A DNA stretch of 64,000 bases, taken from positions 62,001 to 126,000 of IMG/VR virus record IMGVR_UViG_3300043570_001980. The stretch is one strand, 5' to 3'. The position numbers were made by a program, and so were the translations under genes. The notes under the pieces were generated by a model. The model ran no database searches and was not told the DNA's origin. It saw only the letters and a program-made list of their open reading frames with translations. This document shows positions 9,158-56,863 of the stretch, piece after piece (position 1 is the first letter of the stretch; each line of letters begins with the position of its first letter).

Positions 9158-9176
9158 TAACTGTACAGGATTTTTT

Positions 9177-38245: not shown

Positions 38246-38425
38246 ATGAATCAGATATATCATATCCAATCTCTCAACGGAGATTTAATTGAGTATTTTT
38301 TTGATCCTGATTTGGTAGATAGTTGGTTCCCAGAGAATCTTGATAAAATTAATAATTTAGGCCCAGTTCTAGTTGACATTGTTGATAAAAAGCAATATAA
38401 TAGCATGAACAAGGACAATACATGA
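38246..38425 (+). CDS. Small hypothetical protein (59 aa; not in ORF track)
   Basis: MNQIYHIQSLNG...; stop overlaps the ATG at 38422. Confidence 0.4.
   Translation: MNQIYHIQSLNGDLIEYFFDPDLVDSWFPENLDKINNLGPVLVDIVDKKQYNSMNKDNT
38373..38401 (+). promoter_or_regulatory. Sigma70 consensus promoter
   Basis: TTGACA-17 nt-TATAAT. Confidence 0.8.
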
Positions 38426-38718
38426 AATGGTTTTGGAGATATCTTTTTAACAAAATAGATAGAGTTGGCTCTGATTGCGAGGCTGTGCCTGCTCGTAATA
38501 TTAGCAAACACAGTCGACTAATGAATAGTACTGATGATTACCCAGACGGCGGCCTAAATATACAAGTTAAATCTGCTATTGGCGGTAAAATTGTAATCTT
38601 TAGGAACTACGATCAAAGAACAGATAGAACAAACCACACAACTTATATTATCAACAGCGATGAGAATTTTTCTGAATCACTAGGTAAAATTATAACTACT
38701 GAAAGTCTTAAATTATGA
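38422..38718 (+). CDS. Hypothetical protein
   Basis: aagga SD; coupled to the next gene. Confidence 0.6.
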   Translation: MKWFWRYLFNKIDRVGSDCEAVPARNISKHSRLMNSTDDYPDGGLNIQVKSAIGGKIVIFRNYDQRTDRTNHTTYIINSDENFSESLGKIITTESLKL

Positions 38719-39164
38719 ATCAAGAGCAACGAGAAAAAATTGATAGAATTAAACAATATGCAGAACGAAAAATCTGGGTCACGTTCCGCAAAGAAGGCAT
38801 CCACAAGTATCCGGCAGCCTTGGAAGACCCGCAACTAGCAACAGGAGATGAATATGATGTTTCGTTTTTGGGCTATCCTCATCGTCATATTTTTCATTTC
38901 AGGGTTTGGATTGACGTATTCCACAATGACCGAGATGTGGAGTTTATACAATTCAAGCGTTGGCTCGAAAAATTGTATTCTAGCAACCAAGGTGTACTGT
39001 CGTTAGACTACAAGAGTTGCGAAATGATCTCAGACGATCTGTACTTGCAGATTGCCGAAAGGTATCCTGACCGTGCGGTCTGGATTGAAGTGGCCGAAGA
39101 TGGTGAGAACGGCGCTTTGATCAAGTATGAAATTTCTCGCTCAAGTTTGTCAATCAAAATTTAA
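38715..39164 (+). CDS. QueD-paralog T-fold protein (DpdL-like, putative CDG decarboxylase)
   Basis: LGYPHRHIF matches LxxxHRHxF; also SCEMI and EVAEDGENGA, QueD-like C-terminus. Confidence 0.65.
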   Translation: MNQEQREKIDRIKQYAERKIWVTFRKEGIHKYPAALEDPQLATGDEYDVSFLGYPHRHIFHFRVWIDVFHNDRDVEFIQFKRWLEKLYSSNQGVLSLDYKSCEMISDDLYLQIAERYPDRAVWIEVAEDGENGALIKYEISRSSLSIKI

Positions 39165-39175
39165 TAGGAAATAGT

Positions 39176-39382
39176 ATGGCCAAGCCTACATTTAAAACCA
39201 ACCCTCGTCTTAATCAAATTTTTGAAGAGCTAGAAAAATTTCTAGATTTTTGTATTAGATTTGGCTATCGTTACAACGAAACCGATTTGTATAACTGGAA
39301 GAGTTATGCATGGCAACAATACAGCAAACATGCCCAAGGCAAAAACGCCAAGGACATGTGGACTGCTGACACAAGACCTTAA
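39176..39382 (+). CDS. Small hypothetical protein
   Basis: agga SD; 68 aa. Confidence 0.55.
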   Translation: MAKPTFKTNPRLNQIFEELEKFLDFCIRFGYRYNETDLYNWKSYAWQQYSKHAQGKNAKDMWTADTRP

Positions 39383-39390
39383 GGGTTAAT

Positions 39391-40587
39391 ATGAGAAAAC
39401 TATTCTACATGGGCTTGGAAAGTTACGAAGCCCGTTACACACTACAACTCACTGAATGGAATCGACGTGTATTTGAACGTCGAGGCATTGATGTAGTGTA
39501 TGTTCCTGGATCCACTATAGACAATACTAAAAGTATTAGTGTAGGACAGGTTTTAGACGCACACGGGCGCAGTTACTTTGGCATGAGTCAGATGATGAAT
39601 CTTGTACAGCTGATGCGTAATGGTGAATGCTCAGGAAAAGATGTTGTGTACTTTGAAGACATGTTCCAGCCAGGCATTGAAAGCTTGCCTTATATCATGA
39701 ATCAGATTCCAACAGAACAAAGACCTCGTGTGTATGTTCGTTGTCTGGCACAGGCTATTGATCCCGACGACTTTGTACATGTATGGGGCATGAGCAAGTG
39801 GATGAGTTTGTATGAACAAATGGTCAATGAATTTGTTACAGGTGTACTGGCTACCAACGAAGAAATGGTAGCCCACATGCGTATTGCCAATTGGACTGCA
39901 CCTATCTACAATATTAGCGGTTTAGCATTTGGCAAAGAAGAAGTGTTAGAACGCATAGGTGGCACAGCAAATATCAAACCATTTGCCGATCGTAAAATGC
40001 GGGTAGGGTTTGCCGCAAGATTTGACCAAGAAAAGCAACCAGGTTTCTTTATGGACCTGGCTGAACGTGTTCAAGAAGAACAGCCTCAGATTAGCTTTGC
40101 TATCTTCTCTGGAGGTCCGTTGCGGTCAAACAATAATAATTATGTAAAACGTGCTCGCAAATTACAAGCTAGTGGATTACTTGAGATTCATGAAAACTTA
40201 ACTAAAAATGAGTATTACTCTCTTCTTAATGACACTCGTGTTCTTTTCAATTGTGCTCTTCAAGACTGGGTGTCAAACACAGTTTCAGAAGCTGACACAC
40301 TTGGCGCTAATGTGCTTTACCCTGCTTATCGTAGTTTTCCAGAAACATTTGCTAACGACCTAGACCGTCTGTACATTCCCTGGAGTGAGGATGATGTAGT
40401 TAGAAAACTTAATAATCTATTAGAAAAATCTCATCATAACATTGGTCTCATCAGTGACTGGAACAACGGAACTATTGATAGAATCTGCGATATCATGCAA
40501 GGCAAAGGAGAGCAATGGAATCGTGCAGGCAATCGATATCGAGACCATGTGGCTGGCGCAAAATATAAAGTTAGGAAAGTTGAATGA
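39391..40587 (+). CDS. GT-B glycosyltransferase
   Basis: GFAARFDQEKQP and EADTLGANVLYP, the C-terminal GT-B nucleotide-sugar motif. Confidence 0.75.
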   Translation: MRKLFYMGLESYEARYTLQLTEWNRRVFERRGIDVVYVPGSTIDNTKSISVGQVLDAHGRSYFGMSQMMNLVQLMRNGECSGKDVVYFEDMFQPGIESLPYIMNQIPTEQRPRVYVRCLAQAIDPDDFVHVWGMSKWMSLYEQMVNEFVTGVLATNEEMVAHMRIANWTAPIYNISGLAFGKEEVLERIGGTANIKPFADRKMRVGFAARFDQEKQPGFFMDLAERVQEEQPQISFAIFSGGPLRSNNNNYVKRARKLQASGLLEIHENLTKNEYYSLLNDTRVLFNCALQDWVSNTVSEADTLGANVLYPAYRSFPETFANDLDRLYIPWSEDDVVRKLNNLLEKSHHNIGLISDWNNGTIDRICDIMQGKGEQWNRAGNRYRDHVAGAKYKVRKVE

Positions 40588-41561
40588 ATGTTGACTCTTA
40601 TAAATTAGTAGTAGTTACTGGTGCTGCCGGGTATATCGGTGGACAAACAATGATTTCGTTAAAGCGGTTAGGGTACATAGTTCTTGGAGTTGATCAGAAT
40701 ACGTTGCCCAAACATTTAATGTTGGTACCAAATCAATTCCATCGAGGGGATTTTGCATCTGAGGAAATCATCAATGTCATCGAGGCCGCCAGGCCAGCCG
40801 CGGTCATTCATTGTGCAGGAACTAGTCTAGTTGGACCCAGTGTTAAGAATCCAAAAGAATACTGGAATAATAACATTGCAAAGAACATACAATTTCTGGA
40901 TAGAATTTGTAGTATTCCAGCAGAATATCGTCCCAAAATTATCTTTAGTAGTAGTGCTAGTGTTTATGGTAATCCAATTATGACTCCTTGTCACGAAGTT
41001 GATCCTTGCGAACCAATTAGTCCATATGGAGAAACAAAACGGGCTATGGAATGGATTTTAGAAGGATATAAAGTAGCTTATGGATTAGAATATGTTGCAT
41101 TCCGATATTTCAATGCCTGCGGTGCAGATAGTAAAATACAGCACGGGCAAGCACCCAATGCAACACACATTATTGCTCGTGTGTTAGAGAGTTTACGGGA
41201 TGGTCAAGAATTCACTCTCAATGGTAACAATTATCCCACTGCTGACAAAACCTGCATTAGAGATTACATTCATGTTGAGGACATTGCACATGCACACATA
41301 TTGGCAATTGATGCAGAACTTCCTAGTGGGACTTATAATCTTGGAACCAGTACAGGATCAAGTAATCAGGACATTATCAATTCAGCAGAAAAAATTACAG
41401 GATTAAAACTACAGGTAAAAATAGGTCCACAAAGAGATGGTGATCCGGAGATCCTGACTGCCAGCGCAGATAAATTTAGTTCTTTAACCAATTGGAAACA
41501 GCAGTTTTCACTAGATGATATAATTAAACATGCCTGGCTTTGGTATAATAGAAAACAGTAA
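40584..41561 (+). CDS. galE: UDP-glucose 4-epimerase-like NAD-dependent epimerase
   Basis: TGAAGYIGG, FSSSASVYG, YGETK, FRYFNACGA, IRDYIHV. Confidence 0.9.
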   Translation: MNVDSYKLVVVTGAAGYIGGQTMISLKRLGYIVLGVDQNTLPKHLMLVPNQFHRGDFASEEIINVIEAARPAAVIHCAGTSLVGPSVKNPKEYWNNNIAKNIQFLDRICSIPAEYRPKIIFSSSASVYGNPIMTPCHEVDPCEPISPYGETKRAMEWILEGYKVAYGLEYVAFRYFNACGADSKIQHGQAPNATHIIARVLESLRDGQEFTLNGNNYPTADKTCIRDYIHVEDIAHAHILAIDAELPSGTYNLGTSTGSSNQDIINSAEKITGLKLQVKIGPQRDGDPEILTASADKFSSLTNWKQQFSLDDIIKHAWLWYNRKQ

Positions 41562-42228
41562 ACTTTGGGTATTTGGACAAAGTATGTCCTTGCCTTACAA
41601 TATTGGGTCACCCGAACATGGATGGCCCAATCTTCTTAGTAAAAAGCTAAATATAGAGTACGAAAATTATGCTCAAGCAGGAGCAGATAATTTTTTCATT
41701 TATCATACGTTTTTAGAAAATCTTAACAGAATTACAGACAACGATTTGGTAATAATTGGATGGAGTCACCCATCACGAAAATCCTTTATCATTGACAATG
41801 ATAACCCAGTACACACAGAAGCTATTAAAAAAAGTTTAGTGTATACCACCAAAACAAAACAGTTATTTCGCAGTAATAACAATTTTCTTAACACACAAAA
41901 AAAGTGGTCAACATTGACTCCTACGTCAACTGGGATCAATTTTTATGATAATTGGTTTGACAATTATTATTCGTTATACGAACAAACCTGCAATTTTCTA
42001 AGTTACACCGATAGTGTAAAATTGCGGTGTCCTGGGACTTATGTTCCGTTTTATTTTAGCAAAGAAAGCACACAAGATTTAAAACTTGTTGGTGCTGGAT
42101 ATATGTTGGATTTCATTGTTGACAACAATGTTGCGATAAGTAAAAATGATTGTCACCTTAATGATTATGGTCACCAAATGTGGTCAGAGCATATTTACAA
42201 TTATATAAAAAAATCAAAAAATGCATAA
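41530..42228 (+). CDS. SGNH-like hypothetical protein
   Basis: VFGQS, GWSHPSR, DCHLNDYGH. Start uncertain. Confidence 0.5.
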   Translation: MPGFGIIENSKLWVFGQSMSLPYNIGSPEHGWPNLLSKKLNIEYENYAQAGADNFFIYHTFLENLNRITDNDLVIIGWSHPSRKSFIIDNDNPVHTEAIKKSLVYTTKTKQLFRSNNNFLNTQKKWSTLTPTSTGINFYDNWFDNYYSLYEQTCNFLSYTDSVKLRCPGTYVPFYFSKESTQDLKLVGAGYMLDFIVDNNVAISKNDCHLNDYGHQMWSEHIYNYIKKSKNA

Positions 42229-44101
42229 TGTTTACTTACTACAGCCCGCACATGGAAATGTGTTTGGCGGAACCGAAGGGTATTGGTTGCCGTATTCTGT
42301 AGGATGCCTTTGGAGTTTTGCTGTACAAAACCCGGTGATTAAAGATAACTTTGCACTTAAAGAGTTGGTCTTTAAAAGAATGTCAATTGACGAAACAATT
42401 AAAAACTTTGATAATCCATCCGTGGCAGCATTTAGTTGTTATGTCTGGAATTACGAATATTGTAAAAAACTAGCCGAGGCTATTAAAGAAAAATGGCCCA
42501 AGTGTCTTATTGTATTTGGTGGACCACAAGTTACTAAATTACCCTATGAAAAATCTTTCTTTAAGAAACATCCATATGTTGATACAATTGTCAATGGTGA
42601 AGGTGAGCCGGCATTTTTAGATATACTATTATCATTATATCATAATAAACCAATTAAAAAAGTTAGTACGTTTGCTAGAATGGCCAACTTAGAGTACCCA
42701 AGCCCATACACATCGGGTGTGTTTGATAAAATAGTCAAGGATAATCCTGAGTATTACTGGCAAGGAGTATTAGAAACCAACCGTGGATGCCCGTATTCAT
42801 GTACTTTTTGTGATTGGGGTAGCTTAACATACAGCAAGGTTCTTAAATTTGCAGAAGATCGGGTACTAGACGAGCTTACTTGGATGGCTAACAATCGTGT
42901 TGCATATTTGTTTATTGCTGATGCAAATTTTGGCATGCTCTATGAAAGAGATAAAAAGTTTGCACAACACATCCATCAATTACAAAACACAAAGGGATTT
43001 CCGCATGTTGTTATTGCCCAATGGGCTAAAAATGCAAAACAAAAAATTATAGAAATTGCAAAAATATTTTTTAGTAATGATAAAAATAGAGGATTTACTG
43101 TCAGTGTGCAAAGCATGAACGACCAAGTTCTCGATGCTATCAAAAGAAAGAATATGGAAATCAGCGATCTTAAAGAAATGCTAGAAGAATGTTTTAAAAA
43201 TGGTATTCCAGCATACACTGAAATGATCCTCGGACTACCCTATGAGACCTATGAAACTTGGAAACAAAATCATGGGCTGATACTCGAGGCCGGGCAACAC
43301 AACAGCCTGGATGTTTGGCTTGCACAATTATTAGAAAACTCAGAACTCAACAGCTATGAGCAACGGACTCTGCACCAGATTGAAAGTATTGCTGTTCCAA
43401 AGTTTGTAACTGGTGCATTAGTTAATGAGGGTGATGATATTATGGAAAAAGAAGTAGTAGTCAAAGCCACAAAGTACATGCCCCTTGAGGATTTTGTTAA
43501 GAGTTATTTGTTTAGTTATATTATAATGACTTATCACTATAGTGGCATCACGCATATTCTAAGTAGGTTCCTAAGAAAACATAAAAATATCAGTTACTAC
43601 GATTTCTATTCTCAAATTGAAAATAAAATTGTTAACGGTCCTAGTACTAGTTTACTGACTCAAGAATACTATAGAATGAAGAATTTTATTGTTTCTTTTT
43701 TAGAAAGTGGCGAAAGTATTATTCCAAACAGGGATGGGCATAGTGCGCTTTGGACCAGTATCCACATATTGTTTGATAATGTTGATTTGACGCTTGAAGA
43801 AATTTATCAAATTATTAACAACGAATTTTGCGAGTTGGATCCTGAAATTTATAAAGAAGTAATGTTGTTGCAATCTGATTATCTACATCATTATGAAGGT
43901 AGTTACCCGTATACTGTTGACTATCAATACAACATTTACGATTATGTGTTCAACAACTCTGACGAATTAAACGTTCCAAACACACTTGAAATTTCGTATC
44001 CATTTAAGCATAAAAACAAACAGGACTTCTTTGAACAATTATATTTTGGTCGACGAGCATCAGTATCAAAAAACAGAATTAACAAAATTGACAATGTTTG
44101 A
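42221..44101 (+). CDS. Cobalamin-binding radical SAM protein
   Basis: B12 domain (FSCYVWN, VFGGP, GEGE) plus RGCPYSCTFC. Confidence 0.88.
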   Translation: MHNVYLLQPAHGNVFGGTEGYWLPYSVGCLWSFAVQNPVIKDNFALKELVFKRMSIDETIKNFDNPSVAAFSCYVWNYEYCKKLAEAIKEKWPKCLIVFGGPQVTKLPYEKSFFKKHPYVDTIVNGEGEPAFLDILLSLYHNKPIKKVSTFARMANLEYPSPYTSGVFDKIVKDNPEYYWQGVLETNRGCPYSCTFCDWGSLTYSKVLKFAEDRVLDELTWMANNRVAYLFIADANFGMLYERDKKFAQHIHQLQNTKGFPHVVIAQWAKNAKQKIIEIAKIFFSNDKNRGFTVSVQSMNDQVLDAIKRKNMEISDLKEMLEECFKNGIPAYTEMILGLPYETYETWKQNHGLILEAGQHNSLDVWLAQLLENSELNSYEQRTLHQIESIAVPKFVTGALVNEGDDIMEKEVVVKATKYMPLEDFVKSYLFSYIIMTYHYSGITHILSRFLRKHKNISYYDFYSQIENKIVNGPSTSLLTQEYYRMKNFIVSFLESGESIIPNRDGHSALWTSIHILFDNVDLTLEEIYQIINNEFCELDPEIYKEVMLLQSDYLHHYEGSYPYTVDYQYNIYDYVFNNSDELNVPNTLEISYPFKHKNKQDFFEQLYFGRRASVSKNRINKIDNV

Positions 44102-44690
44102 CAAAATATTAAAATTTGAACAAGCTCTAGCAGAGTTTACCGGTGCGCCATATGCAATCATGACTGATTGTTGTACGCATGCTATTGAACTGTGTTTGCG
44201 ATACGATCAAGTCAAGGAGTGCAAGTTTACTCCTTATACCTATTTGAGTATTCCAATGACCATGCACAAGTTAGGTATCAAATACGAGTACCTTGATCAT
44301 GCCTGGCAACGCTGGGTCGGCGAATACCCTTTTGTAGGCACACGCATTTGGGATTCAGCACGTAGACTCGAACAAGATATGTATCGTCCGGACACATTGA
44401 CCTGCCTGAGCTTTGGGCATGGCAAACCACTTCACATTGGTCGTGGTGGTGCTATCTTGCTGGATGATGTCGAAGCCTACAATATCATGCTGGCTCAACG
44501 CTACGACGGCAGAGACTTAGCTATCAAGCCATGGGAATCACAGCAGGTGTTCAAGGTGGGTTATCATTACAAGCCCACCATAGAAGAAGCAGAAATTGGT
44601 TTGGACCTGCTCAACGTAATCAAGGTTAATAGGCCGCAACCCGTGTATGTTGATTATCCAGACTGTAGACAAATAACCATTGAGGATTAA
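44094..44690 (+). CDS. Short DegT/DnrJ-like PLP-dependent protein
   Basis: DCCTHAIELCL, WDSA, LSFGHGKPL..GRGG. Start moved to ATG 44094; only 198 aa. Confidence 0.7.
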   Translation: MFDKILKFEQALAEFTGAPYAIMTDCCTHAIELCLRYDQVKECKFTPYTYLSIPMTMHKLGIKYEYLDHAWQRWVGEYPFVGTRIWDSARRLEQDMYRPDTLTCLSFGHGKPLHIGRGGAILLDDVEAYNIMLAQRYDGRDLAIKPWESQQVFKVGYHYKPTIEEAEIGLDLLNVIKVNRPQPVYVDYPDCRQITIED

Positions 44691-44693
44691 AAA

Positions 44694-45233
44694 ATGTTTG
44701 TACAAAAAATTAAACTAGACTATAATTTTGGTATTTTTCTAAATGCCGACTATACCACACACGAAGATACCTGTATCAAACATCAGGTGACCGAAATGGC
44801 TGACATCTATGCATCCTATGGTGGATTGCCAAAAAGTTACTGTTATGAAAATACTAAAATTAATCAACTTTGGTGGACTCCGGATCAGATAGACTTTATA
44901 GAAATTGGTCAACAGTTAGGTATGGAAATTGTCACTATGTCAAGTATTAGACAACAACCTGGCTGTATAACCACCTTGCACAAAGATACATTCTACCAAA
45001 TTAAAAAACGATTTCCTGAACGTACTGAACTAAAAGTCAGAGCCAATGTCTATTTGGAAGATTACAAATTTGGGCAAATGATTCAATACATTTCCCCGGA
45101 CAATACTTTTGAAACCAGTGTTGGTTGGAAACAGGGCGAGGGCTGGATGTGGGATAGTGATATCCAACATCTAAGCTGTAATGCAGGCATGGAAGACAAA
45201 TATACTCTCCAAATTTCAGGCTTTAGGATTTGA
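44694..45233 (+). CDS. Cupin / 2OG-Fe(II) oxygenase-like protein
   Basis: LHKD (HxD) and a distal HLSCNAG. Confidence 0.55.
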   Translation: MFVQKIKLDYNFGIFLNADYTTHEDTCIKHQVTEMADIYASYGGLPKSYCYENTKINQLWWTPDQIDFIEIGQQLGMEIVTMSSIRQQPGCITTLHKDTFYQIKKRFPERTELKVRANVYLEDYKFGQMIQYISPDNTFETSVGWKQGEGWMWDSDIQHLSCNAGMEDKYTLQISGFRI

Positions 45234-45267
45234 CTTTTTTAAATAAATCTGTTAAACTTAATAAATA
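45230..45267 (+). promoter_or_regulatory. Tandem sigma70-type and late-type promoters for folE
   Basis: TTGACT-17 nt-TAAACT, then ATAAATA at 45261. Confidence 0.55.
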
Positions 45268-45329
45268 TTCTTGCTACACAAAGGTAGCAAATATCAAAAT
45301 TTAAAATCCGCGTAAGGAAGGATATCAAT

Positions 45330-46013
45330 ATGTCATACAACAAAACAAAATGCGACCCTGAATTGGGTCTACTAGTACACAAACACTTGGTCAAGTGTGG
45401 TGTAGAAACTCCTACATTTCAACATGCAGTTGATCGTAAAGATAAAATTGAGTTAATCGAAAAAGACTTTAAACATATCATGGAAGTGTTGGGTTTAGAC
45501 CTTAGTGATGATAGTCTAATGGATACACCAAAGCGTGTGGCCAAGATGTATGTTAATGAAATCTTCTGGGGTCTTGACTATGAAGCGTTTCCAAAATGTA
45601 CTACAGTTGACAACAAGATGAAATACGATGAAATGGTTATTGAACGTAATGTCAACGTACAAAGCAATTGCGAACATCACTTTGTTGTGATTGATGGTGT
45701 AGCAACTGTGGGTTACATTCCCAAACAAAAAGTCTTGGGCTTATCTAAGATCAATCGTGTTGTTGAATACTTTAGCAAACGTCCACAAATTCAAGAGCGT
45801 CTGACAGAACAGGTATATCATGCTCTACAATACATTCTTGACACTGATGATATTGCGGTGGTAGTCGATGCTCAACACTATTGTGTAAAGAGTCGCGGCG
45901 TAGAGGACACAGGATCGTCAACAGTTACTAGCAAACTTGGCGGAGTATTCAAGAGTGATCCATCAGTTCGTAACGAGTTTATGAATATTGTTAATGCGTG
46001 TAAAAGAAATTAA
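45330..46013 (+). CDS. folE: GTP cyclohydrolase I
   Basis: DTPKRVAKMY, SNCEHH, GLSK, RPQIQERLT, HYCVKSRG. Confidence 0.95.
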   Translation: MSYNKTKCDPELGLLVHKHLVKCGVETPTFQHAVDRKDKIELIEKDFKHIMEVLGLDLSDDSLMDTPKRVAKMYVNEIFWGLDYEAFPKCTTVDNKMKYDEMVIERNVNVQSNCEHHFVVIDGVATVGYIPKQKVLGLSKINRVVEYFSKRPQIQERLTEQVYHALQYILDTDDIAVVVDAQHYCVKSRGVEDTGSSTVTSKLGGVFKSDPSVRNEFMNIVNACKRN

Positions 46014-46016
46014 TAT

Positions 46017-46709
46017 ATGAATAACGTAAACGAATACAATGTATCCAAATTTAAAGAAGAGTTTCTGAATACAGATTTATACCGGACTCTCGAAAAAGAC
46101 TTTGACCATTTAGTCTGGACCAAACACTGGCCGTATCAAAAACATGCAAGTACTCCTAGACAAATGTGGGGAGATCGGCTACGAGAGACTTATTTTTCTC
46201 TAACACCTTTTTATTATCTAAAACCATTGTTGGAAAAATCTCCGGACACAATATATGATATAGGATGTGGCTGGAATATTTTTAAAAAATATATACCTAA
46301 TATTGTTGGTGTAGATTTCAATGATGACTATCGAGACATTGATGATCAATTTGATGATGAATATGTTAAAAATCATCAACAATATTTTGAATCAGTATTT
46401 TCAATTTGTGCCTTGCATTTTTGTTCATTAACTAAATTTGAGAATCAAATACAACAATTTGTTTCAATGATCAAACCTGGCGGGCGAGGATATCTGGCAT
46501 TAAATTTTCAAAGATTCACTGACTTTACAAGTGAAACTGATTTAATTAAACTTTTTAACACAGCAAAGCCCAACGGTGCAATGTACAATCAGTTTATCCG
46601 TGATGCGTTATCAAATATAGATTGTAATTATTTGATTGTGGACGTTGACATTAGCACTCACAATGAACAAATGGACGGAAATATTCGTATTGTGGTAGAA
46701 GCCAAGTAG
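46017..46709 (+). CDS. Class I SAM-dependent methyltransferase-like protein
   Basis: IYDIGCG motif I; KPGGRGYL. Confidence 0.7.
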   Translation: MNNVNEYNVSKFKEEFLNTDLYRTLEKDFDHLVWTKHWPYQKHASTPRQMWGDRLRETYFSLTPFYYLKPLLEKSPDTIYDIGCGWNIFKKYIPNIVGVDFNDDYRDIDDQFDDEYVKNHQQYFESVFSICALHFCSLTKFENQIQQFVSMIKPGGRGYLALNFQRFTDFTSETDLIKLFNTAKPNGAMYNQFIRDALSNIDCNYLIVDVDISTHNEQMDGNIRIVVEAK

Positions 46710-46718
46710 TCAAGCTTC

Positions 46719-46756
46719 AGCGGTCTTTAGAGCATCATCCCGCTATACAAATTCTG
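46719..46756 (+). ncRNA. Candidate preQ1-I-like H-type pseudoknot aptamer upstream of queD
   Basis: P1 AGCGG/CCGCT; C immediately before the P1 3' strand; A-rich tail ATACAAA; P2 TAGAG/TTCTG. Confidence 0.4.
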
Positions 46757-46790
46757 CTGTCTATGCTATAATTTAACATAGGAGAAAAGC

Positions 46791-47324
46791 ATGTCAGACA
46801 ATTTTAACGCAGTAGTCGAGCAAAAGTATCGTCCGGTGACCTACAAGTTTACCAGTACCAAAGAGTACATTGATGCATTTCCGTGTGCCTACCGACAGTG
46901 GAGAGCCGACAGTCATTGTAACTTGAATCATGGTTACTCGTTTAGTATGAAGTTTTACTTTGGTACCAACCACCTTGACGTCCGCAACTGGGCCGCTGAC
47001 TATGGTGGTCTCAAAGAACTTAAAAAGATTTTAGAAGATCAATTTGATCACACAACCTTGGTCAGTGCCGATGATCCGGAACTAGAATTCTACAAAGAAA
47101 TGGAACGTCGTAAACTGGCCAAGCTCACAATCTTGCCCCGAGTTGGATGTGAATCACTTGCAGACATGCTGTACAAGTATGTGAACGGTGTTTACATTCC
47201 TGACTTTTGGGGAGAGTACGAAGCAAGTCGTTTATGGTGCTACCGAGTGGAAGTGCGTGAAACACAAGCAAACATGGCTTTTAGAGAAGGCCATAGAGAA
47301 TGGAACGAGGATTTATTTGAATGA
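46791..47324 (+). CDS. queD: 6-carboxytetrahydropterin synthase-like (QueD) protein
   Basis: HCNLNHGY (CxxxHG), DYGGLKELK, FDHTTL, EVRET; strong aggaga SD. Confidence 0.8.
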   Translation: MSDNFNAVVEQKYRPVTYKFTSTKEYIDAFPCAYRQWRADSHCNLNHGYSFSMKFYFGTNHLDVRNWAADYGGLKELKKILEDQFDHTTLVSADDPELEFYKEMERRKLAKLTILPRVGCESLADMLYKYVNGVYIPDFWGEYEASRLWCYRVEVRETQANMAFREGHREWNEDLFE

Positions 47325-48163
47325 AATTAATTGAAATACCAGCTTTAATTTTAGAGCCAAAATATGATGTGGCTGTATTATTACCCACACGAGGACGCAC
47401 AACTGCATTGCTCGATAGTCTAAACAGCCTGATTGACCACGCCGATGATGTAAAATCAATACAAATTTTACTGGGCATGGATGATGATGACACAGAGTCT
47501 ATTGAGTGGGCGGCAAAAAATATTTTTAAAGATTTTGACAGTCGAGGTATTTCAACGTCAATATTGGAATTTAAACCGGTTGGCTACACTCGCTTGAATG
47601 AATATGTAACAGCACTGGCTAAAAAAAGCAATGCACGTTGGTTAATGTTCTGGAACGACGATGCACTCATGCAAACACAGGGCTGGGACAGTCGAATAAA
47701 AGAGCACACCGGTAAGTTTCGTGTGTTGAGAATGCCCACACACAATGAACACCCTTATGCTGTATTTCCAATTGTGCCAAGAGATTGGTTAATGTTATTT
47801 GATTATCTAAGCGCACATCAACTTTCCGACGCATGGATTAGTCAGATTGCCTATATATTGAATATCATGGAAACTATTTCCGTTGATGTACTACACGATC
47901 GACACGACCTAACCGGTAATAATAACGACGAAACTTTTCAGAATAGAATTATGTACGAGGGTCGGCCTGAAGATCCTAGAGACTTTAATCACTTTGACCA
48001 TCGACGTCAACGCTTTTTAGATGCTAGTCGAATTGCTTGGTTTATGCATGCTCGAGGTGAAGATGTTAGTTGGTTTATGAATGTACTGGCAAACAAACAA
48101 GACCCGTGGGTTAGAATGCTTGATGAGTTTGACCCAAATAAACAAATGGCAAAATTTAATTAA
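47321..48163 (+). CDS. GT2-family glycosyltransferase
   Basis: VLLPTRGR, LGMDDDD, FWNDD. Confidence 0.75.
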   Translation: MKLIEIPALILEPKYDVAVLLPTRGRTTALLDSLNSLIDHADDVKSIQILLGMDDDDTESIEWAAKNIFKDFDSRGISTSILEFKPVGYTRLNEYVTALAKKSNARWLMFWNDDALMQTQGWDSRIKEHTGKFRVLRMPTHNEHPYAVFPIVPRDWLMLFDYLSAHQLSDAWISQIAYILNIMETISVDVLHDRHDLTGNNNDETFQNRIMYEGRPEDPRDFNHFDHRRQRFLDASRIAWFMHARGEDVSWFMNVLANKQDPWVRMLDEFDPNKQMAKFN

Positions 48164-48165
48164 TT

Positions 48166-48936
48166 ATGGACTTACAAAAAAGAATTCTTGACTACTGGAA
48201 CACACAACCATGTAATGTTGGGCACAGTAGTGCTACCATTGGCTCTGAACAGTACTTTGACGAAGTAACAAGCAAACGATATCGTGCTGAACCACACATC
48301 CTTGATTTTGCTGGATTTCACAGTTGGCGAGGTAAACGTGTATTAGAAATTGGATGTGGTATTGGCACGGATGCTGAACAGTTTGCTCGTCACGGTGCCG
48401 AATACGTGGGCATTGATTTGTCAGATGCCAGTTTAGATTTGTGCAAGCAAAGATTCAATGTCTATGACCTCGAAGGTGAGTTTTACAATATTGACATCAC
48501 TGACCGCAAAGTGTTAGACTTAGGACAATTTGATTTGGTCTACAGCTACGGAGTCCTGCATCATTACCCAGGCATGCAAGATCATATTAAAACTGTTGCC
48601 AGTTTGTTAACACCCGACGGCGAGTTTAGATTTATGGTCTATGCCAAAAACTCCTGGAAGTATGCTATGATTCGAAAAGGTCTAGATCAATTTGAAGCTC
48701 AGGCAAATTGTCCTTATGCAGAAGCATATACTTCAGAAGAAATACACGAGTTGCTAAAAGAAGATTTCGATGTGTTACGCTTACGACAAAGTCATTGCTT
48801 TATGTATAATGTAGAAAAATACAAGCAGGGTATTTTTGAACTTGAGCCGTGGTTTGAAGCAATGCCCGAATTAATGAGAGAAGCAGTTAAAGAATATTTA
48901 GGCTGGCATCTTTTGGTAAAAGCAAAGAAGTTATGA
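48166..48936 (+). CDS. Class I SAM-dependent methyltransferase
   Basis: VLEIGCGIG, GIDLS, FDLVYSYGVLHH, LTPDG. Confidence 0.88.
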   Translation: MDLQKRILDYWNTQPCNVGHSSATIGSEQYFDEVTSKRYRAEPHILDFAGFHSWRGKRVLEIGCGIGTDAEQFARHGAEYVGIDLSDASLDLCKQRFNVYDLEGEFYNIDITDRKVLDLGQFDLVYSYGVLHHYPGMQDHIKTVASLLTPDGEFRFMVYAKNSWKYAMIRKGLDQFEAQANCPYAEAYTSEEIHELLKEDFDVLRLRQSHCFMYNVEKYKQGIFELEPWFEAMPELMREAVKEYLGWHLLVKAKKL

Positions 48937-49211
48937 ACTCAAAAATAAACGAAGTGATGGATATCCTCCAGGAAGAGTGTGCTGAGGTTATACAAATTGT
49001 AAGCAAGATACGTAGATTTGGCATAGATGAAATTCATCTGAAACGTGGAATGTCCAATAGAGAAATGTTGTGCGAAGAAGTAGGCGATGTACTGTGCATG
49101 GTTGAATTGCTTAGAGAACTTAAAATTATTGATGATGCTAGTATACAAGCCGCTGTTCAAAATAAAAGAAAAAAGTTACAGCAGTGGTCAACCATATATG
49201 AAAGCCAGTGA
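48933..49211 (+). CDS. MazG-like nucleotide pyrophosphohydrolase
   Basis: EECAE...EEVGDV. Confidence 0.75.
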   Translation: MNSKINEVMDILQEECAEVIQIVSKIRRFGIDEIHLKRGMSNREMLCEEVGDVLCMVELLRELKIIDDASIQAAVQNKRKKLQQWSTIYESQ

Positions 49212-50046
49212 CATCAAATGGCTTCATGTTGAAGCTAGTTCAAAATGCAATGCTTGGTGTCCGGCTTGTCCCAGAAACAACAATGGATATGGATTGAAGC
49301 CAGGACTGGTTGAACAAGATCTTGAAACTGATCGGTTAGCTGATATTCTAAATCAACTGCCAATGTTGGACGGCATACAATTTTGCGGAAACTACGGTGA
49401 TCCAGTGATAGCTCACAATTTTATTGAATTGATTAAACTTGCTAAACGTCACACTCAAAAAATACAAATACATACCAACGGTAGCTTAAGAACTACTGCA
49501 TGGTGGAAAGATTTAGCAAATTTATTAACTGACATCAATCATGACGTTTGGTTTGGTATAGATGGGCTAAAAGGTGTACACGAAATATATCGGCAAGGCA
49601 CAGACTATAACAAAGTAATTGAAAATGCCAAGGCATTTATATCAGCTGGTGGAACAGCAACATGGCAATTTATACCATATGCACACAACGAACATCAGGT
49701 TAAAGATTGTATACGCACTAGCCAAAAACTAGGATTTAAACATTTTAAATTGGTTAAATTATATCGCAATCGTCAATTGGCCAAAAATTATAGAACTGGA
49801 GAGGAATTTGATCTTTTACCACCGGTGGAATTTCAACATCTGATACGTATGCCAAAAATATCAACTGTGGTTGATCCAAAAAATTGTATACATTTATTGC
49901 CGCCTTCGATGTATCTAGCCGCATCAGGAAAACTGAGTACATGTTGTTTTTTTGCTCCAGTAGAAAAATTTGACAGCATTGACGAATTACTGTATAATAA
50001 ACTAGATCTAACACACAATCAGTGTTTGATATCATGTGGAACATAA
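49198..50046 (+). CDS. Radical SAM protein
   Basis: KCNAWCPAC, GNYGDP, HTNG. Start moved to ATG 49198. Confidence 0.8.
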   Translation: MKASDIKWLHVEASSKCNAWCPACPRNNNGYGLKPGLVEQDLETDRLADILNQLPMLDGIQFCGNYGDPVIAHNFIELIKLAKRHTQKIQIHTNGSLRTTAWWKDLANLLTDINHDVWFGIDGLKGVHEIYRQGTDYNKVIENAKAFISAGGTATWQFIPYAHNEHQVKDCIRTSQKLGFKHFKLVKLYRNRQLAKNYRTGEEFDLLPPVEFQHLIRMPKISTVVDPKNCIHLLPPSMYLAASGKLSTCCFFAPVEKFDSIDELLYNKLDLTHNQCLISCGT

Positions 50047-50047
50047 T

Positions 50048-50929
50048 ATGAAAATAAAAGTAAGCGAACTGTTTTACTCCGCACAAGGTGAAGGACGCTT
50101 TGTTGGTGTACCCAGTGTTTTTTTACGCACATTTGGCTGTAACTTTAAATGTGCAGGATTTGGTATGCCCCCAGGGGAAGTGAGTCATGAAGCCACTGAC
50201 ATTGCGGCAACTCACAAATTGATCCAGCCTTTTAAAAAGTTTGAAGACTTGCCATTGGTCAATACCGGCTGTGACAGTTATGCCAGCTGGCATCCGGACT
50301 TTAAAGACCTAAGTCCAACTATTGATAACAATAAGCTGGTAGATCAAATGTTGGCATTGACACCCAATCACAAATGGGTACAAGACAATGGTAATGATGT
50401 ACATTTGGTTATCACAGGTGGTGAGCCGTTGTTGGGATGGCAACGTGCATATGAAGAATTAATTAGTAACCCAAACATGGGAGATTTGCGTAACATTACA
50501 TTTGAAACCAATGGTACTCAAAAATTGCAACCCAGTTTTAAAGATTTCATGCACGAATGGCAACGAGCTCCATTGGGCGGCAAGAAAGATCGCGAAATTA
50601 CATTTTCAGTCAGTGCCAAGCTCAGTGCCAGCGGTGAGAGTTGGGAGGAAGCAATCTGTCCTGACATTGTTGCCAGCTATCAAGCACTAGGCACAGTATA
50701 TCTCAAATTTGTTGTTGAAACCAACGAACATTTTGCAGAAGTAGAACGTGCAGTTAAAGAATTTAGAGCAGGTGGATTTACCGGTGTTGTTTACGTTATG
50801 CCACAGGGTGGTGTGGTTACTCCTTATGCGCAGAATCGTGTTCGTGTGGCAGACTGGGCATGCAGTCGTGGTTATTACTACAGTCCAAGACTACACGTTG
50901 ACCTATGGGGCAACGGATGGGGGAAATAA
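50048..50929 (+). CDS. queE: 7-carboxy-7-deazaguanine synthase
   Basis: SELFYSAQGEG...FLRTFGCNFKC...CDS, ITGGEP, FETNG, SPRLHVDLWG. Confidence 0.92.
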   Translation: MKIKVSELFYSAQGEGRFVGVPSVFLRTFGCNFKCAGFGMPPGEVSHEATDIAATHKLIQPFKKFEDLPLVNTGCDSYASWHPDFKDLSPTIDNNKLVDQMLALTPNHKWVQDNGNDVHLVITGGEPLLGWQRAYEELISNPNMGDLRNITFETNGTQKLQPSFKDFMHEWQRAPLGGKKDREITFSVSAKLSASGESWEEAICPDIVASYQALGTVYLKFVVETNEHFAEVERAVKEFRAGGFTGVVYVMPQGGVVTPYAQNRVRVADWACSRGYYYSPRLHVDLWGNGWGK

Positions 50930-50930
50930 A

Positions 50931-51194
50931 ATGAATTTTGTTTTAAATTACATTAAGTCTCATGTGCCACAAATGGAAATGATTGGGGTTATCATGCGTA
51001 TCATTAGTTTTAGTTTGGTGTCATGGTTAGGCCCGGCTAGTCCGTTTATGTTTGTATGGGTATTCAATACTTTAGATGCTATTCTATTAACATATTGTGC
51101 TAGACTAAAGAGAGATCCAGCATACACGCTGTTAAATGCTTTCTGGATCCTAGTTGGGATCATTGGGATTGCTAGAGCAGGAGGGTGGGCATAA
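50931..51194 (+). CDS. Small membrane protein
   Basis: Three hydrophobic segments; ATG 50931. Confidence 0.55.
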   Translation: MNFVLNYIKSHVPQMEMIGVIMRIISFSLVSWLGPASPFMFVWVFNTLDAILLTYCARLKRDPAYTLLNAFWILVGIIGIARAGGWA

Positions 51195-51569
51195 ATGAAA
51201 CTGTTTGACAAGTTCTTTAAGAAAAAAACAAAACAACCCGAGCAACCAAAAGAAGCAAAGGCTCCTAAGAAAACAGAAAAAGAGTTAGCTACTGAACGTG
51301 GAGAGCCTTATGTGGCAATACTAGGTTTAGAAATTGATGCCAATAATATGCATCAAGGTGCATTTGACCTTGACTGGAATGAAAAATTTGTAGCCAATCT
51401 GCTACGTGCAGGATATGCGGGAAAAACAGATGCTGACATAGTCGACCAATGGTTCCAAAATGTCTGCAGACATGTGGTGATGGAAACATGGGAACAAGAG
51501 CAGGCAATGAATCCCAATACATACACCAGAGAACGAGACCTAGGCGGCGGAAGAAAAGAAATTTCATGA
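51195..51569 (+). CDS. Hypothetical protein
   Basis: Coupled ORF of 124 aa. Confidence 0.6.
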   Translation: MKLFDKFFKKKTKQPEQPKEAKAPKKTEKELATERGEPYVAILGLEIDANNMHQGAFDLDWNEKFVANLLRAGYAGKTDADIVDQWFQNVCRHVVMETWEQEQAMNPNTYTRERDLGGGRKEIS

Positions 51570-52051
51570 TTTTCAATCACATTAAACAACTCAAAGCAGA
51601 CGGTAAAAAAATTGGCATCACGTTCTCGACCTTTGACATGCTACACGCAGGGCATATTGCCATGCTCAGTGAAGCAAAGAATCACTGCGATTACTTGATA
51701 TGCGGACTACAAACAGACCCTACCATTGATCGTCCTGATACTAAAAATCATCCTGTGCAAAGTATTGTTGAGAGACAAATACAGTTGGCAGCCTGCCGCT
51801 ATGTAGACGAAGTTGTGGTGTACCAAACCGAGCAAGATCTAATTGACCTGTTGTTGATCCTGCCACTGGATGTGCGTATCTTGGGTGTAGAATATGCTGA
51901 GAAAGAGTTCTCAGGACAAGGCGAATGCTATGACAGAGGCATTGAAATTGTGTTTAACAAACGTGATCATAGTTTCAGTAGTTCGAGTTTAAGGAAGCGG
52001 GTAGTTCACGCAGAAACATTTAAGGTATTAAAAGATGGAAATCCAACCTAA
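51566..52051 (+). CDS. Cytidylyltransferase (TagD/RfaE-like)
   Basis: TFSTFDMLHAGH, GLQTDP, YVDEV; ATG 51566. Confidence 0.88.
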   Translation: MIFNHIKQLKADGKKIGITFSTFDMLHAGHIAMLSEAKNHCDYLICGLQTDPTIDRPDTKNHPVQSIVERQIQLAACRYVDEVVVYQTEQDLIDLLLILPLDVRILGVEYAEKEFSGQGECYDRGIEIVFNKRDHSFSSSSLRKRVVHAETFKVLKDGNPT

Positions 52052-56857: not shown

Positions 56858-56863
56858 TATAAT
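56835..56863 (+). promoter_or_regulatory. Sigma70 consensus promoter for the tRNA cluster
   Basis: TTGACA-17 nt-TATAAT, 11 nt before the first tRNA. Confidence 0.85.

Follow-up and report, generated by a model that had tools for sequence, protein, structure and literature searches.

A glycosyltransferase linked to DpdL within a 7-deazaguanine DNA-modification gene cluster of a giant phage: a predicted sugar-carrying deazaguanine

Organization of the gene cluster

The sequence analysed is a stretch of 64,000 nucleotides (positions 62,001 to 126,000 of the IMG/VR virus record IMGVR_UViG_3300043570_001980), hereafter called the window. Positions 38715 to 52051 of the window are occupied by a row of about 20 tightly packed ORFs, all on the + strand. 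The junctions range from a 32-nt overlap to a 96-nt gap, except for 265 nt before the ORF at 51195; two larger apparent overlaps disappear when later start codons are considered. The features of the cluster, together with those found upstream, are collected in Table 1.

Table 1. Features of the deazaguanine cluster and of its upstream region (positions in the window). Fractions refer to the related viral loci examined; for the variable and core genes, to the 46 loci with room.
Position	Strand	Predicted product	Observations
33781..35346	+	DpdA-like transglycosylase (TGT fold), 521 aa	AF2 model: pLDDT 83, pTM 0.83; all top 50 Foldseek PDB matches are tRNA-guanine transglycosylase (E about 1e-6); D109-S-G-G-F-Q114 invariant; hhalign against ACP17 gp123 / X1 "queuine tRNA-ribosyltransferase" E 6e-4; 34% identical to PA5oct gp168; 61 of 61 loci with enough upstream sequence; missed by PF01702, phrog_20335 and phrog_10773
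35521..36063	+	Conserved protein of unknown function, 180 aa	74 of 80 loci; homologs include ACP17 gp122 and ORFs beside the GT and DpdL in loci L091 and L096; no family or PDB match
38373..38401	+	Sigma-70-type promoter consensus (perfect)	TTGACA-N17-TATAAT, just upstream of the 38422/DpdL/GT block; consensus match only
38715..39164	+	DpdL (QueD-like T-fold paralog, proposed CDG decarboxylase)	LxxxHRHxF motif present as LGYPHRHIF; phrog_17812 E 1e-35; 36% identical to phiST CGPG_00067, which is DpdL (PMC10516641)
39176..39382	+	Small basic ORF, 68 aa, pI 9.1	Conserved between DpdL and the GT in 77 of 80 loci; no family match
39391..40587	+	GT4-type GT-B glycosyltransferase (GT) of a DpdL-linked subfamily	Pfam Glycos_transf_1 below cut-off; AF2 model pLDDT 94.5; PDB top matches MshA, BshA, PimA, glycogen synthase and SenB; pI 6.1
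40584..41561	+	UDP-glucose 4-epimerase (GalE)	TIGR01179 279.7 bits (cut-off 262.3); 46 of 46 loci
41530..42228	+	Unknown function, 232 aa, variable	No family match; 3 of 46 loci
42221..44101	+	B12-binding radical SAM enzyme, KedN5-like C-methyltransferase type, variable	PF02310 plus PF04055; NF033712 E 6e-67 but below cut-off; CPYSCTFC motif; 17 of 46 loci
44094..44690	+	Miniaturised DegT-like PLP protein, 198 aa, clade-core	Starts at the ATG at 44094; two segments align to sugar aminotransferases, with about 65 aa missing between them and no C-terminal domain; PLP lysine K111 invariant; 44 of 46 loci
44694..45233	+	2OG/Fe(II) hydroxylase-like protein (Asp/Arg-hydroxylase type), variable	Atlas neighbours include clusters named Asp/Asn/Pro hydroxylase, one carrying PF05118; H-x-D...H triad, H95, D97 and H158 invariant; lead-level evidence only; 6 of 46 loci
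45330..46013	+	GTP cyclohydrolase I (FolE)	PF01227 E 8e-63; NF006824 above cut-off
46017..46709	+	Putative SAM methyltransferase (weak), variable	Methyltransf_23 E 0.009; phrog_4752 E 6e-4; 5 of 46 loci
46791..47324	+	QueD (6-carboxytetrahydropterin synthase type)	PF01242 E 2.5e-14; 49% identical to ACP17 QueD
47321..48163	+	GT2-type (GT-A) glycosyltransferase, near-core	phrog_14945 E 7e-8; nearest Atlas cluster is GT2, with PF00535 in 62% of members; D113 and D114 invariant; 40 of 46 loci
48166..48936	+	Class I SAM methyltransferase, variable	Methyltransf_12/25/11 E 1e-16 to 1e-19; phrog_22502; 12 of 46 loci
48933..49211	+	MazG-like NTP pyrophosphohydrolase, variable	PF03819 26.2 bits (cut-off 22); 2 of 46 loci; phiST also has a MazG beside DpdL
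49087..50046	+	Radical SAM enzyme (twitch/SPASM-like), variable	Probable start near 49198; CNAWCPAC motif; PF04055 29.0 bits (cut-off 29.5); phrog_21308 E 3e-29; 5 of 46 loci
49970..49998	+	Sigma-70-type promoter consensus (perfect)	Just upstream of QueE; consensus match only
50036..50929	+	QueE (7-carboxy-7-deazaguanine synthase type)	phrog_2076 E 3e-49; 47% identical to BUCT-ZZ01 QueE; NCBIfam QueE models match only in parts
51195..51569	+	Unknown function, 124 aa	Partial match to phrog_13349; also present in locus L040
51566..52051	+	Sugar-1-phosphate nucleotidyltransferase (RfaE domain II / TagD-like)	TIGR02199 E 7e-23; phrog_7878 E 6e-31; PF01467; ORF called from 51449, start inferred from the ATGA overlap

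An earlier note, made from the sequence alone, had described this row as possible tailoring enzymes interleaved with deazaguanine genes, co-directional and largely coupled. This observation is confirmed, and most of the labels that were proposed hold: the dpdL-like gene, the GT-B, GalE, the B12 radical SAM, FolE, QueD, the GT2, the methyltransferase at 48166, MazG, the second radical SAM and QueE. The short DegT is real but truncated, the «cupin» is rather a 2OG oxygenase-like protein, the methyltransferase at 46017 is only weakly supported, and the «cytidylyltransferase» is a sugar-1-phosphate nucleotidyltransferase. The ORFs at 39176, 41530 and 51195 had not been listed, nor had the TGT-like gene, which lies upstream of the range considered in the note.

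The window contains five perfect sigma-70-type consensus sites, all on the + strand, against 0 expected in shuffled sequences. The position of the first one listed in Table 1 suggests that DpdL, the GT and GalE are read together, though it must be noticed that these sites are consensus matches only.

Distribution of the glycosyltransferase

The GT belongs to a small and distinct family, i.e., only 791 representatives at E<=1e-3. When its model was compared to the viral structures of BFVD, the top two matches were a 370-aa protein and ACP17 gp124, followed by a sharp drop, thus the GT is set apart from other viral GTs. Residues R210, K215, D292 and E300 are invariant or nearly so, i.e., the donor-binding and catalytic residues of an active transferase are kept.

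The note had named as a test whether the GT is distributed independently of dpdA; the result is in favour of an association. The GT family is essentially confined to deazaguanine clusters, next to DpdL, and next to a TGT-like gene wherever the sequence reaches far enough. DpdL accompanies the GT in 78 of 80 related IMG/VR loci (median gap 287 nt), and both exceptions lack upstream sequence. In 18 phage records, belonging to seven cultured-phage lineages (PA5oct, ACP17, Phosso, X1/BUDD, BCSR5, BUCT-ZZ01), the GT lies within 3 kb of DpdL, usually between or beside the DpdA-type gene and DpdL. Among distant metagenomic relatives, 8 of 8 GT representatives sampled at 29-46% identity have DpdL within 1.7 kb, usually with FolE, QueD and QueE. 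On the contrary, ten DpdL-positive phage records lack this GT, and phiST makes dDG with DpdL and no GT; the GT is therefore an add-on and not a requirement of the pathway. A TGT-fold gene was found also in ACP17, X1, BCSR5, BUCT-ZZ01, PA5oct and the loci L091, L095 and L096.

A hypervariable island

In related phages the space among the deazaguanine genes is a hypervariable island dominated by nucleotide-sugar enzymes. GalE, the short DegT and the GT2 are clade-core inside the cluster, interleaved with FolE and QueD. Relatives carry other NDP-sugar cassettes in the same slots: 4,6-dehydratases, a full DegT, TylC3-like C-methyltransferases, RmlD-like reductases, UDP-glucose dehydrogenases and an acyltransferase. 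These variable cassettes insert directly next to the DpdL-linked GT. BCSR5 has a weak PIG-L-type deacetylase match in its deazaguanine cluster. The methyltransferases, both extra radical SAM enzymes, MazG and the hydroxylase are variable passengers (2-17 of 46 loci), and the same region takes up clearly unrelated genes, i.e., Bax inhibitor, an MFS transporter (in one relative), an AMP-binding enzyme, FG-GAP proteins, a subtilase and TctC. No flippase, polymerase or lipid-carrier transferase appeared among the 25 commonest families of the island census. The cluster is embedded among replication genes: clamp, flap endonuclease and, in relatives, DNA polymerase.

No QueC above cut-off was found in two complete relatives with terminal repeats, and no ThyA-family gene (the dCMP/dUMP hydroxymethylase family) was found in the contig or in complete relatives.

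A deazaguanine pathway with a putative glycosylation branch

The comparison of these results leads to the reading that the locus is a 7-deazaguanine DNA-modification cluster carrying its own glycosylation branch; the probability of this reading is estimated at about 0.55. What rests on homology or fold is the following: FolE, QueD and QueE make 7-carboxy-7-deazaguanine (CDG); in the absence of a detected QueC, preQ0 would not be made; DpdL is the proposed CDG decarboxylase, with a homolog in phiST, whose DNA holds 2'-deoxy-7-deazaguanine; the divergent TGT-fold protein is the candidate DNA guanine transglycosylase, though it could in principle act on tRNA; and a GT4-type glycosyltransferase that looks catalytically intact is genetically locked to DpdL across very distant phages.

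The chemistry, the acceptor atom and the order of steps are, on the contrary, inferred. In this view CDG or 7-deazaguanine is made, glycosylated and inserted into DNA: the GT would put a sugar on the deazaguanine, either on the free base before a roomy DpdA-like enzyme inserts it, or on the base once it is in DNA. GalE, the RfaE-II-like nucleotidyltransferase and the short DegT-like protein would supply or alter the NDP-sugar, and the GT2 would add a second sugar, whereas the strain-variable B12 radical SAM, methyltransferases and 2OG hydroxylase would tailor the sugar or the base. The evidence for the variable methyltransferases and radical SAM enzymes remains circumstantial. Neither 7-deazaguanine nor CDG offers an ordinary hydroxyl acceptor; one chemically plausible acceptor is the electron-rich C7 that decarboxylation unmasks (C-glycosylation), but this is speculation. 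It must be noticed also that the solved structures closest to the GT act on small molecules, lipids or glycans and not on DNA, that the GT is acidic, and that the short DegT lacks parts of the canonical aminotransferase.

Published data bring outside support. PA5oct, which has the same module, resists restriction enzymes in a pattern pointing to a modified G (PMC12191111). Cui et al. could not obtain dDG from ACP17 DpdL plus DpdA alone in E. coli and suggested that other enzymes may be needed (PMC10516641); the GT lies between those two genes. A GT acting on a 7-deazapurine base has a precedent in HuiG of huimycin (bioRxiv 10.64898/2026.04.15.718813).

Other readings were considered. It is possible, though less likely, that only the GT-B belongs to the deazaguanine pathway, and that GalE, the short DegT, the GT2, the nucleotidyltransferase, the B12 radical SAM and the methyltransferases build a glycan for virion proteins or the host cell surface, being located here because the region is a hot spot for accessory genes. 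The unrelated cargo, the variability of most tailoring genes and the deoxy- and amino-sugar cassettes, which are typical of surface-glycan loci, agree with this view. However, the conservation of GalE, the short DegT and the GT2 in 40-46 of 46 relatives, the cassettes inserted next to the GT, the lack of flippase, polymerase or lipid-carrier transferase among the commonest families and the promoter-like site argue against it; it is not excluded for the peripheral genes. It is unlikely that the GT glycosylates a free deazapurine base or nucleoside never put into DNA, i.e., a huimycin- or dapiramicin-like small molecule made during infection, for example to poison competitors or host functions. 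The gene set does resemble the huimycin and dapiramicin clusters (FolE/QueD/QueE core, a GT, methyltransferases, and RmlB/RmlD-like genes in relatives; bioRxiv 10.64898/2026.04.15.718813), the best structural matches of the GT are small-molecule GT4 enzymes, and one island holds the MFS transporter. Nevertheless, the TGT-fold gene accompanies the module, the same preprint uses the presence of dpdA as the mark of nucleic-acid pathways, the cluster lies among replication genes and PA5oct DNA behaves as G-modified.

It is likewise doubtful that the GT is only an auxiliary factor for making or inserting plain 7-deazaguanine, for example through a transient glycosyl intermediate or as a partner of DpdL or DpdA, the final base being the already known dDG or dCDG. 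The failure of ACP17 DpdL plus DpdA and the strict GT-DpdL linkage would fit, but phiST-type phages make dDG without this GT (PMC10516641), the GT keeps the residues of an active transferase, and a clade-core GalE with variable NDP-sugar cassettes makes little sense for a transient or non-catalytic role. Finally, GT-B enzymes glucosylate 5-hydroxymethylcytosine in T-even phages, and entries named DNA alpha-glucosyltransferase appear far down the viral fold list; a T4-style glycosylation of a hydroxymethylated pyrimidine, unrelated to the deazaguanine genes, is however very unlikely since no ThyA-like gene was found, the distribution of the GT follows DpdL and the T4 enzymes are not among the listed PDB matches.

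The note had proposed that some of these enzymes may glycosylate or methylate a 7-deazaguanine, giving an undescribed base, with virion or host-surface glycan synthesis as the alternative. This interpretation is supported in part, i.e., for the association of the GT and of the core sugar genes with the deazaguanine pathway, and not for an action of the methyltransferases, the radical SAM enzymes or MazG on the base. No description of such a module was found in the papers searched. If the main reading is right, the outcome would be a sugar-bearing 7-deazaguanine in virion DNA, i.e., a modified guanine not yet reported in DNA, with a sugar that differs between closely related phages.

Location and layout of the region

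The window corresponds to bases 62692-126691 of a 128,804-bp IMG/VR viral contig rated 35% complete by CheckV. Close relatives include genomes of 346,856 and 352,754 bp with terminal repeats, thus this is a jumbo phage of about 350 kb. A nucleotide search of the region against 50,697 phage records found nothing. From 38715 to 52051 every ORF is on the + strand. Junctions range from a 32-nt overlap to a 96-nt gap, many of them being 4-nt overlaps of the ATGA type, with one 265-nt gap before 51195. No convincing + strand terminator splits the row.

Five perfect TTGACA-N17-TATAAT sites were found in the window, all on the + strand, against none in 100 shuffles. Two of them lie just before the block formed by 38422 and DpdL and just before QueE, respectively. 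Although these are consensus matches only, they suggest that the phage uses host sigma-70-type promoters for this long co-directional block.

Coordinates of the features of the window and of other loci (single numbers designate ORFs by their first position; counts out of 46 refer to relatives with enough downstream sequence, counts out of 80 to related IMG/VR loci, the count out of 61 to relatives with enough upstream sequence)
Sequence	Feature	Coordinates	Strand	Occurrence
Window	Sigma-70-type consensus	9129-9157	+	
Window	314-aa protein, faint methyltransferase match	32054-32998	+	64 of 80
Window	521-aa TGT-fold, DpdA-like protein (predicted)	33781-35346		61 of 61
Window	Unexplained protein	35521		
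Window	Bax inhibitor-1 family membrane protein	36276-36971	+	5 of 80
Window	Sigma-70-type consensus	38373-38401	+	
Window	ORF of the DpdL block	38422		
Window	DpdL	38715	+	
Window	Unexplained ORF	39176	+	
Window	GT4-type GT-B glycosyltransferase (predicted)	39391-40587	+	
Window	GalE	40584-41561	+	46 of 46
Window	Unexplained ORF	41530	+	3 of 46
Window	B12-binding radical SAM enzyme	42221-44101	+	17 of 46
Window	Short DegT-like protein	44094-44690	+	44 of 46
Window	2OG/Fe hydroxylase-like protein	44694	+	6 of 46
Window	FolE	45330-46013	+	
Window	Methyltransferase (weak)	46017	+	5 of 46
Window	GT2	47321	+	40 of 46
Window	Class I methyltransferase	48166	+	12 of 46
Window	MazG	48933	+	2 of 46
Window	Radical SAM enzyme	49087	+	5 of 46
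Window	Sigma-70-type consensus	49970-49998	+	
Window	Unexplained ORF	51195	+	
Window	RfaE-domain-II-like sugar-1-phosphate nucleotidyltransferase	51566-52051	+	
Window	Sigma-70-type consensus	56835-56863	+	
Window	Sigma-70-type consensus	63368-63396	+	
G000:C1 (outside the window)	277-aa PP-loop ATPase-like ORF	38388-39221		
L101 (Vibrio phage Bakedbeans gp176)	383-aa protein ending in DpdL	5212-6363		
L087 (Rhizobium phage RHph_I1_18)	Macro-domain protein	7408-8232		
L089 (Xanthomonas phage PhiXhv-15)	Distant GT, GlmS and deacetylase	6747-9981		
L090 (Burkholderia phage BCSR5)	Weak PIG-L deacetylase match	6824-7531		
L086 (PA5oct gp163)	Small phosphoribosyltransferase	8202-8636		
L005 (BUCT-ZZ01)	Small phosphoribosyltransferase	10093-10554		

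Identity of the genes

DpdL has no Pfam hit but matches phrog_17812 (E 1e-35). It carries LGYPHRHIF at residues 52-60, i.e., the published signature LxxxHRHxF that replaces the CxxxHGH of QueD (PMC10516641), and the same motif is present in the homologs of phiST, ACP17, Phosso, X1, RHph_I1_18 and BUCT-ZZ01. It is homologous to phiST CGPG_00067, the protein named DpdL (tblastn E 9e-10, the hit lying exactly on CGPG_00067; blastp E 3e-17, 36% identity). As expected for DpdL, it occurs with FolE, QueD, QueE and a TGT-like gene and without a recognized QueC: only sub-threshold PP-loop matches to QueC were obtained in the contig, and no match above cut-off in the complete relatives G001 and G002. 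A PP-loop ATPase-like ORF gives such a sub-threshold match (E 5e-4), and similar ORFs occur in relatives; it is probably not QueC. The encoded pathway thus ends at CDG or, through the proposed and so far undemonstrated decarboxylase activity of DpdL (PMC10516641), at 7-deazaguanine.

FolE, QueD and QueE are clear. It must be noticed that the FolE slot holds two very different alleles in this clade: the type of the window is 93% identical in the related locus L017, while most relatives (L013, L045, L064 and others) carry a type only 32-39% identical, so a core pathway gene has been swapped. GalE passes the equivalog cut-off of TIGR01179 (279.7 against 262.3 bits). The protein at 42221 has both the B12-binding domain (PF02310, 39.1 bits) and the radical SAM domain (PF04055, 48 bits) above cut-off, with CPYSCTFC at residue 190 as the CxxxCxxC motif; it is closest to KedN5-type C-methyltransferases, although the cut-off of the KedN5 subfamily is not reached (226 against 700).

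The DegT-like protein does not have the full fold-type-I architecture of about 360-390 aa of the DegT/DnrJ/EryC1 sugar aminotransferases. It is a 198-aa miniature aligning to chain residues about 38-108 and 174-256, i.e., about 65 residues are missing between the two segments and the C-terminal domain is absent, while the PLP lysine (K111) is invariant. It is conserved in relatives, so it is not a recent pseudogene. The in-frame stop between this gene and 44694 was considered as a possible read-through, or as the trace of a broken full-length DegT. This was rejected because the downstream ORF is an unrelated hydroxylase-like protein and the two genes are separate in relatives; no alternative genetic code was used. 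The protein at 44694 looks like a 2OG/Fe hydroxylase. The radical SAM enzyme at 49087 carries CxxxCxxC, and the protein at 46017 is only weakly a methyltransferase.

Searches of PDB sequences gave nothing for the TGT-like protein, the GT, GT2 and the proteins at 44694 and 35521. The 35521 family could not be extended beyond ACP17 and the loci L091 and L096, and no explanation was obtained for 35521, 39176, 41530 and 51195. The 314-aa protein with a faint methyltransferase match lies just before the sliding clamp, and in related loci it is conserved at the head of the same block.

A predicted transglycosylase upstream

PF01702 found no transglycosylase in the contig or in 5 relatives, and phrog_20335 (phiST DpdA3) and phrog_10773, the PHROG families of two phage DpdA types, found none in the contig or its relatives, including complete ones. 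However, PF01702 also misses the accepted DpdA3 of phiST, thus its silence was uninformative. The gene was found instead by motif, hhalign and fold. The motifs D109-S-G-G-F-Q114, L202-Q-G204 and H268-F-L-G271 are invariant across 39 sequences and align to the corresponding stretches of ACP17 gp123; they resemble the DSGGFQ, QGG and (L/M)G-x-G-type motifs of TGTs, this equivalence being inferred from general features of TGT motifs. The protein aligns weakly to the ACP17, X1 and BUCT-ZZ01 proteins, one of which is annotated as queuine tRNA-ribosyltransferase (hhalign to phrog_10773 members: E 6e-4, at only 28% probability). Its model (pLDDT 83) has the TIM-barrel fold of TGTs: the 50 best Foldseek matches in the PDB are all bacterial or archaeal tRNA-guanine transglycosylases (probability 1.00, TM by target about 0.5). 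It is 34% identical to PA5oct gp168, and its family in the ESM Atlas is unnamed and viral. It should therefore be filed as TGT-fold and DpdA-like, and not as a member of a named DpdA subfamily; exchange of guanine in DNA for a 7-deazaguanine is an inferred activity.

The glycosyltransferase is tied to DpdL

The model of the GT (pLDDT 94.5) has the two-Rossmann-domain GT-B fold closest to retaining GT4 enzymes. The top PDB matches are glycogen synthase, MshA, BshA, PimA, sucrose-phosphate synthase, GlgM and SenB (E 5e-12 to 1e-10). The Pfam Glycos_transf_1 gathering cut-off is not reached (22.6 against 26.4 bits) while some relatives do pass it in precomputed hits; this is a divergent subfamily. 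R210 is invariant, and K215, D292 and E300 (D-x7-E) are at least 90% conserved across 49 sequences at 28-83% identity, their assignment to donor-binding basic residues and to an E-x7-E-like motif being by position only and not by superposition. Among viral models only two proteins match it closely, i.e., a 370-aa protein and ACP17 gp124, with a sharp drop after them. An exhaustive search finds only 791 representative clusters at E<=1e-3, so the family is small and distinct.

The distribution of the GT follows that of DpdL: (i) in 80 related IMG/VR loci DpdL lies a median 287 nt upstream of the GT, the only two exceptions being loci cut off upstream; (ii) in the phage collection the GT of the window and that of ACP17 together recover 23 records, and in 18 of them, spanning seven lineages, DpdL lies within 3 kb, usually with the TGT-type gene alongside; (iii) eight representatives taken across 29-46% identity all have DpdL within 1.7 kb, mostly together with FolE, QueD and QueE. 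The five other records, from Xanthomonas/Erwinia phages, carry a more distant GT without DpdL, set among GlmS and a deacetylase, and were treated as a neighbouring GT group. In Xanthomonas phage PhiXhv-15 a distant relative of the GT sits with GlmS and a deacetylase of LmbE/BshB type, and no DpdL was found by the DpdL search; together with the weak PIG-L deacetylase match inside the deazaguanine cluster of BCSR5, this hints at GlcNAc transfer followed by deacetylation.

The converse does not hold, since phiST-like phages and a few others have DpdL without this GT. The GT is therefore an addition to a DpdL pathway. Other possible partners of DpdL were observed. In Vibrio phage Bakedbeans DpdL is the C-terminal third of gp176, whose N-terminal part of about 256 aa matched none of the reference proteins compared (BLAST only), i.e., a natural fusion partner. 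In Rhizobium phage RHph_I1_18 a macro-domain ("Appr-1-p processing") protein lies directly after a GT-less DpdL, and a nearby 422-aa "DUF3310" protein is 41% identical to the ORF beside DpdL in Aeromonas phage Ahp1, which may be another partner set. In the Logan contig L095 (7866 bp) the row GT-DpdL-QueE, with a TGT-like gene on the opposite strand, sits next to resolvase, RES-domain and Rep-like genes; the module may also travel on non-phage mobile elements.

The sugar island

Relatives fill the same slots of the island with other cassettes, e.g., a 4,6-dehydratase with a full DegT, a split transketolase, an FkbM methyltransferase and two reductases in one case, and a dehydratase, a TylC3-like C-methyltransferase, a 2OG oxygenase and an acyltransferase in another relative. 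In a census of 104 protein clusters from 53 loci, NDP-sugar epimerases, dehydratases and reductases come first, but unrelated cargo is also present. In the window itself, the Bax inhibitor-1 gene (PF01027, E 6e-54) is inserted between the TGT-like gene and DpdL; in the related locus L050 it sits elsewhere in the island. The region is therefore both sugar-rich and generally plastic.

Comparison with known systems

The 7-deazaguanine (dDG) system of Cellulophaga phage phiST (DpdA3, DpdL, FolE, QueD, QueE and MazG; PMC10516641) shares with the window FolE, QueD, QueE, a DpdL with the LxxxHRHxF motif, a divergent transglycosylase and a MazG in the cluster, and no QueC was recognized in either. However, phiST has no GT and no sugar genes, and its transglycosylase is a 259-aa DpdA3, a type not detected here, where the candidate is the 521-aa TGT-fold protein of another family.

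The cultured phages ACP17, PA5oct-like Wroclawvirus, Phosso, X1/BUDD, BCSR5 and BUCT-ZZ01 have the same three-part module, annotated mostly as hypothetical proteins, with homologous GTs (21-68% identity), DpdL (36-70% identity) and a TGT-type gene next to them. The GT is gp167 in PA5oct and gp124 in ACP17. PA5oct gp168 is a homolog of the TGT-like protein described here, while ACP17, X1, BCSR5 and BUCT-ZZ01 use a phrog_10773-type transglycosylase instead. These phages mostly lack the large sugar-tailoring cassette, apart from an epimerase fragment in PA5oct and the deacetylase match of BCSR5. Small phosphoribosyltransferases lie inside the deazaguanine clusters of PA5oct and BUCT-ZZ01; they might salvage released guanine or make a deazapurine nucleotide.

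The alpha- and beta-glucosyltransferases of T4, acting on 5-hydroxymethylcytosine in DNA, are likewise phage GT-B enzymes using an NDP-sugar, and both here and there decoration of a non-canonical DNA base is proposed as an anti-restriction measure. The GT family is nevertheless different (GT4-like here, the T4 enzymes not being among the listed PDB matches) and the target would be a purine analogue. The huimycin and dapiramicin clusters combine a FolE/QueD/QueE core with a glycosyltransferase, methyltransferases and deoxy-sugar enzymes, HuiC (methyltransferase) and HuiG (glycosyltransferase) acting on a free 7-deazapurine base, and thus give a precedent for a GT that takes a 7-deazaguanine-type base as acceptor (bioRxiv 10.64898/2026.04.15.718813). 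These actinomycete secondary-metabolite clusters have QueC (a preQ0 core) and no DpdA or TGT gene. By this rule, as stated in the same preprint, the present cluster is not of their type, since no QueC was found above cut-off and a TGT-fold gene is present. Sugars are also placed on modified bases in the galactosyl- and mannosyl-queuosine of eukaryotic tRNA, where the base is a 7-deazaguanine derivative, and in base J (glucosyl-hydroxymethyluracil). Those sugars go onto hydroxyl groups, i.e., the cyclopentenediol of queuosine and the hydroxymethyl of hmU, which the pathway encoded here does not provide.

Interpretation

What the analysis itself establishes, by homology, predicted fold and gene neighbourhood, is the tie between the GT and the deazaguanine system, which is well supported. 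That DpdL decarboxylates CDG, that the TGT-like protein acts on DNA, and that a sugar is carried by a deazaguanine in DNA are inferences. A sugar-bearing deazaguanine in DNA is the most economical reading and fits two published observations: PA5oct DNA behaves as G-modified (PMC12191111), and ACP17 DpdL plus DpdA could not be reconstituted without further enzymes (PMC10516641). Glycosylation of a hydroxymethyl-pyrimidine in the manner of T4 was rejected because no ThyA-like gene (PF00303) was found in the contig or in complete relatives. In the literature searched, no paper was found that describes a glycosylated deazaguanine in DNA or this GT as part of the system.

A bolder view, possible but somewhat less likely than not, is that these phages, and cultured ones such as PA5oct and ACP17, would replace guanine in their DNA with a sugar-bearing 7-deazaguanine, possibly C-glycosylated at C7 after DpdL unmasks that carbon. 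The sugar would be swapped and re-tailored between close relatives through a hypervariable NDP-sugar island, as a DNA counterpart of O-antigen variation driven by modification-dependent host defences.

The module is not a rarity. At least about 8000 close relatives of the GT were returned from metagenomes by a word search, and the module is carried by complete or near-complete jumbo phages of 343-353 kb and by several cultured phages of Pseudomonas, Acidovorax, Xanthomonas, Burkholderia, Sinorhizobium and Synechococcus. It may explain why the ACP17 DpdL/DpdA pair could not be reconstituted and why PA5oct behaves as hypermodified and is sensed by END nucleases. Moreover, as the 521-aa TGT-fold family escapes the Pfam TGT model and both PHROG DpdA-type models tried, surveys that use model hits to DpdA as the marker of deazaguanine DNA may miss this group. 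DNA glycosylations are not known to occur elsewhere than on hydroxymethyl-pyrimidines, and no glycosylated purine is known to have been described in DNA. A sugar on a 7-deazaguanine would thus be a new chemical class of DNA base, and would add a further step beyond the eight deazaguanine derivatives catalogued in 2023.
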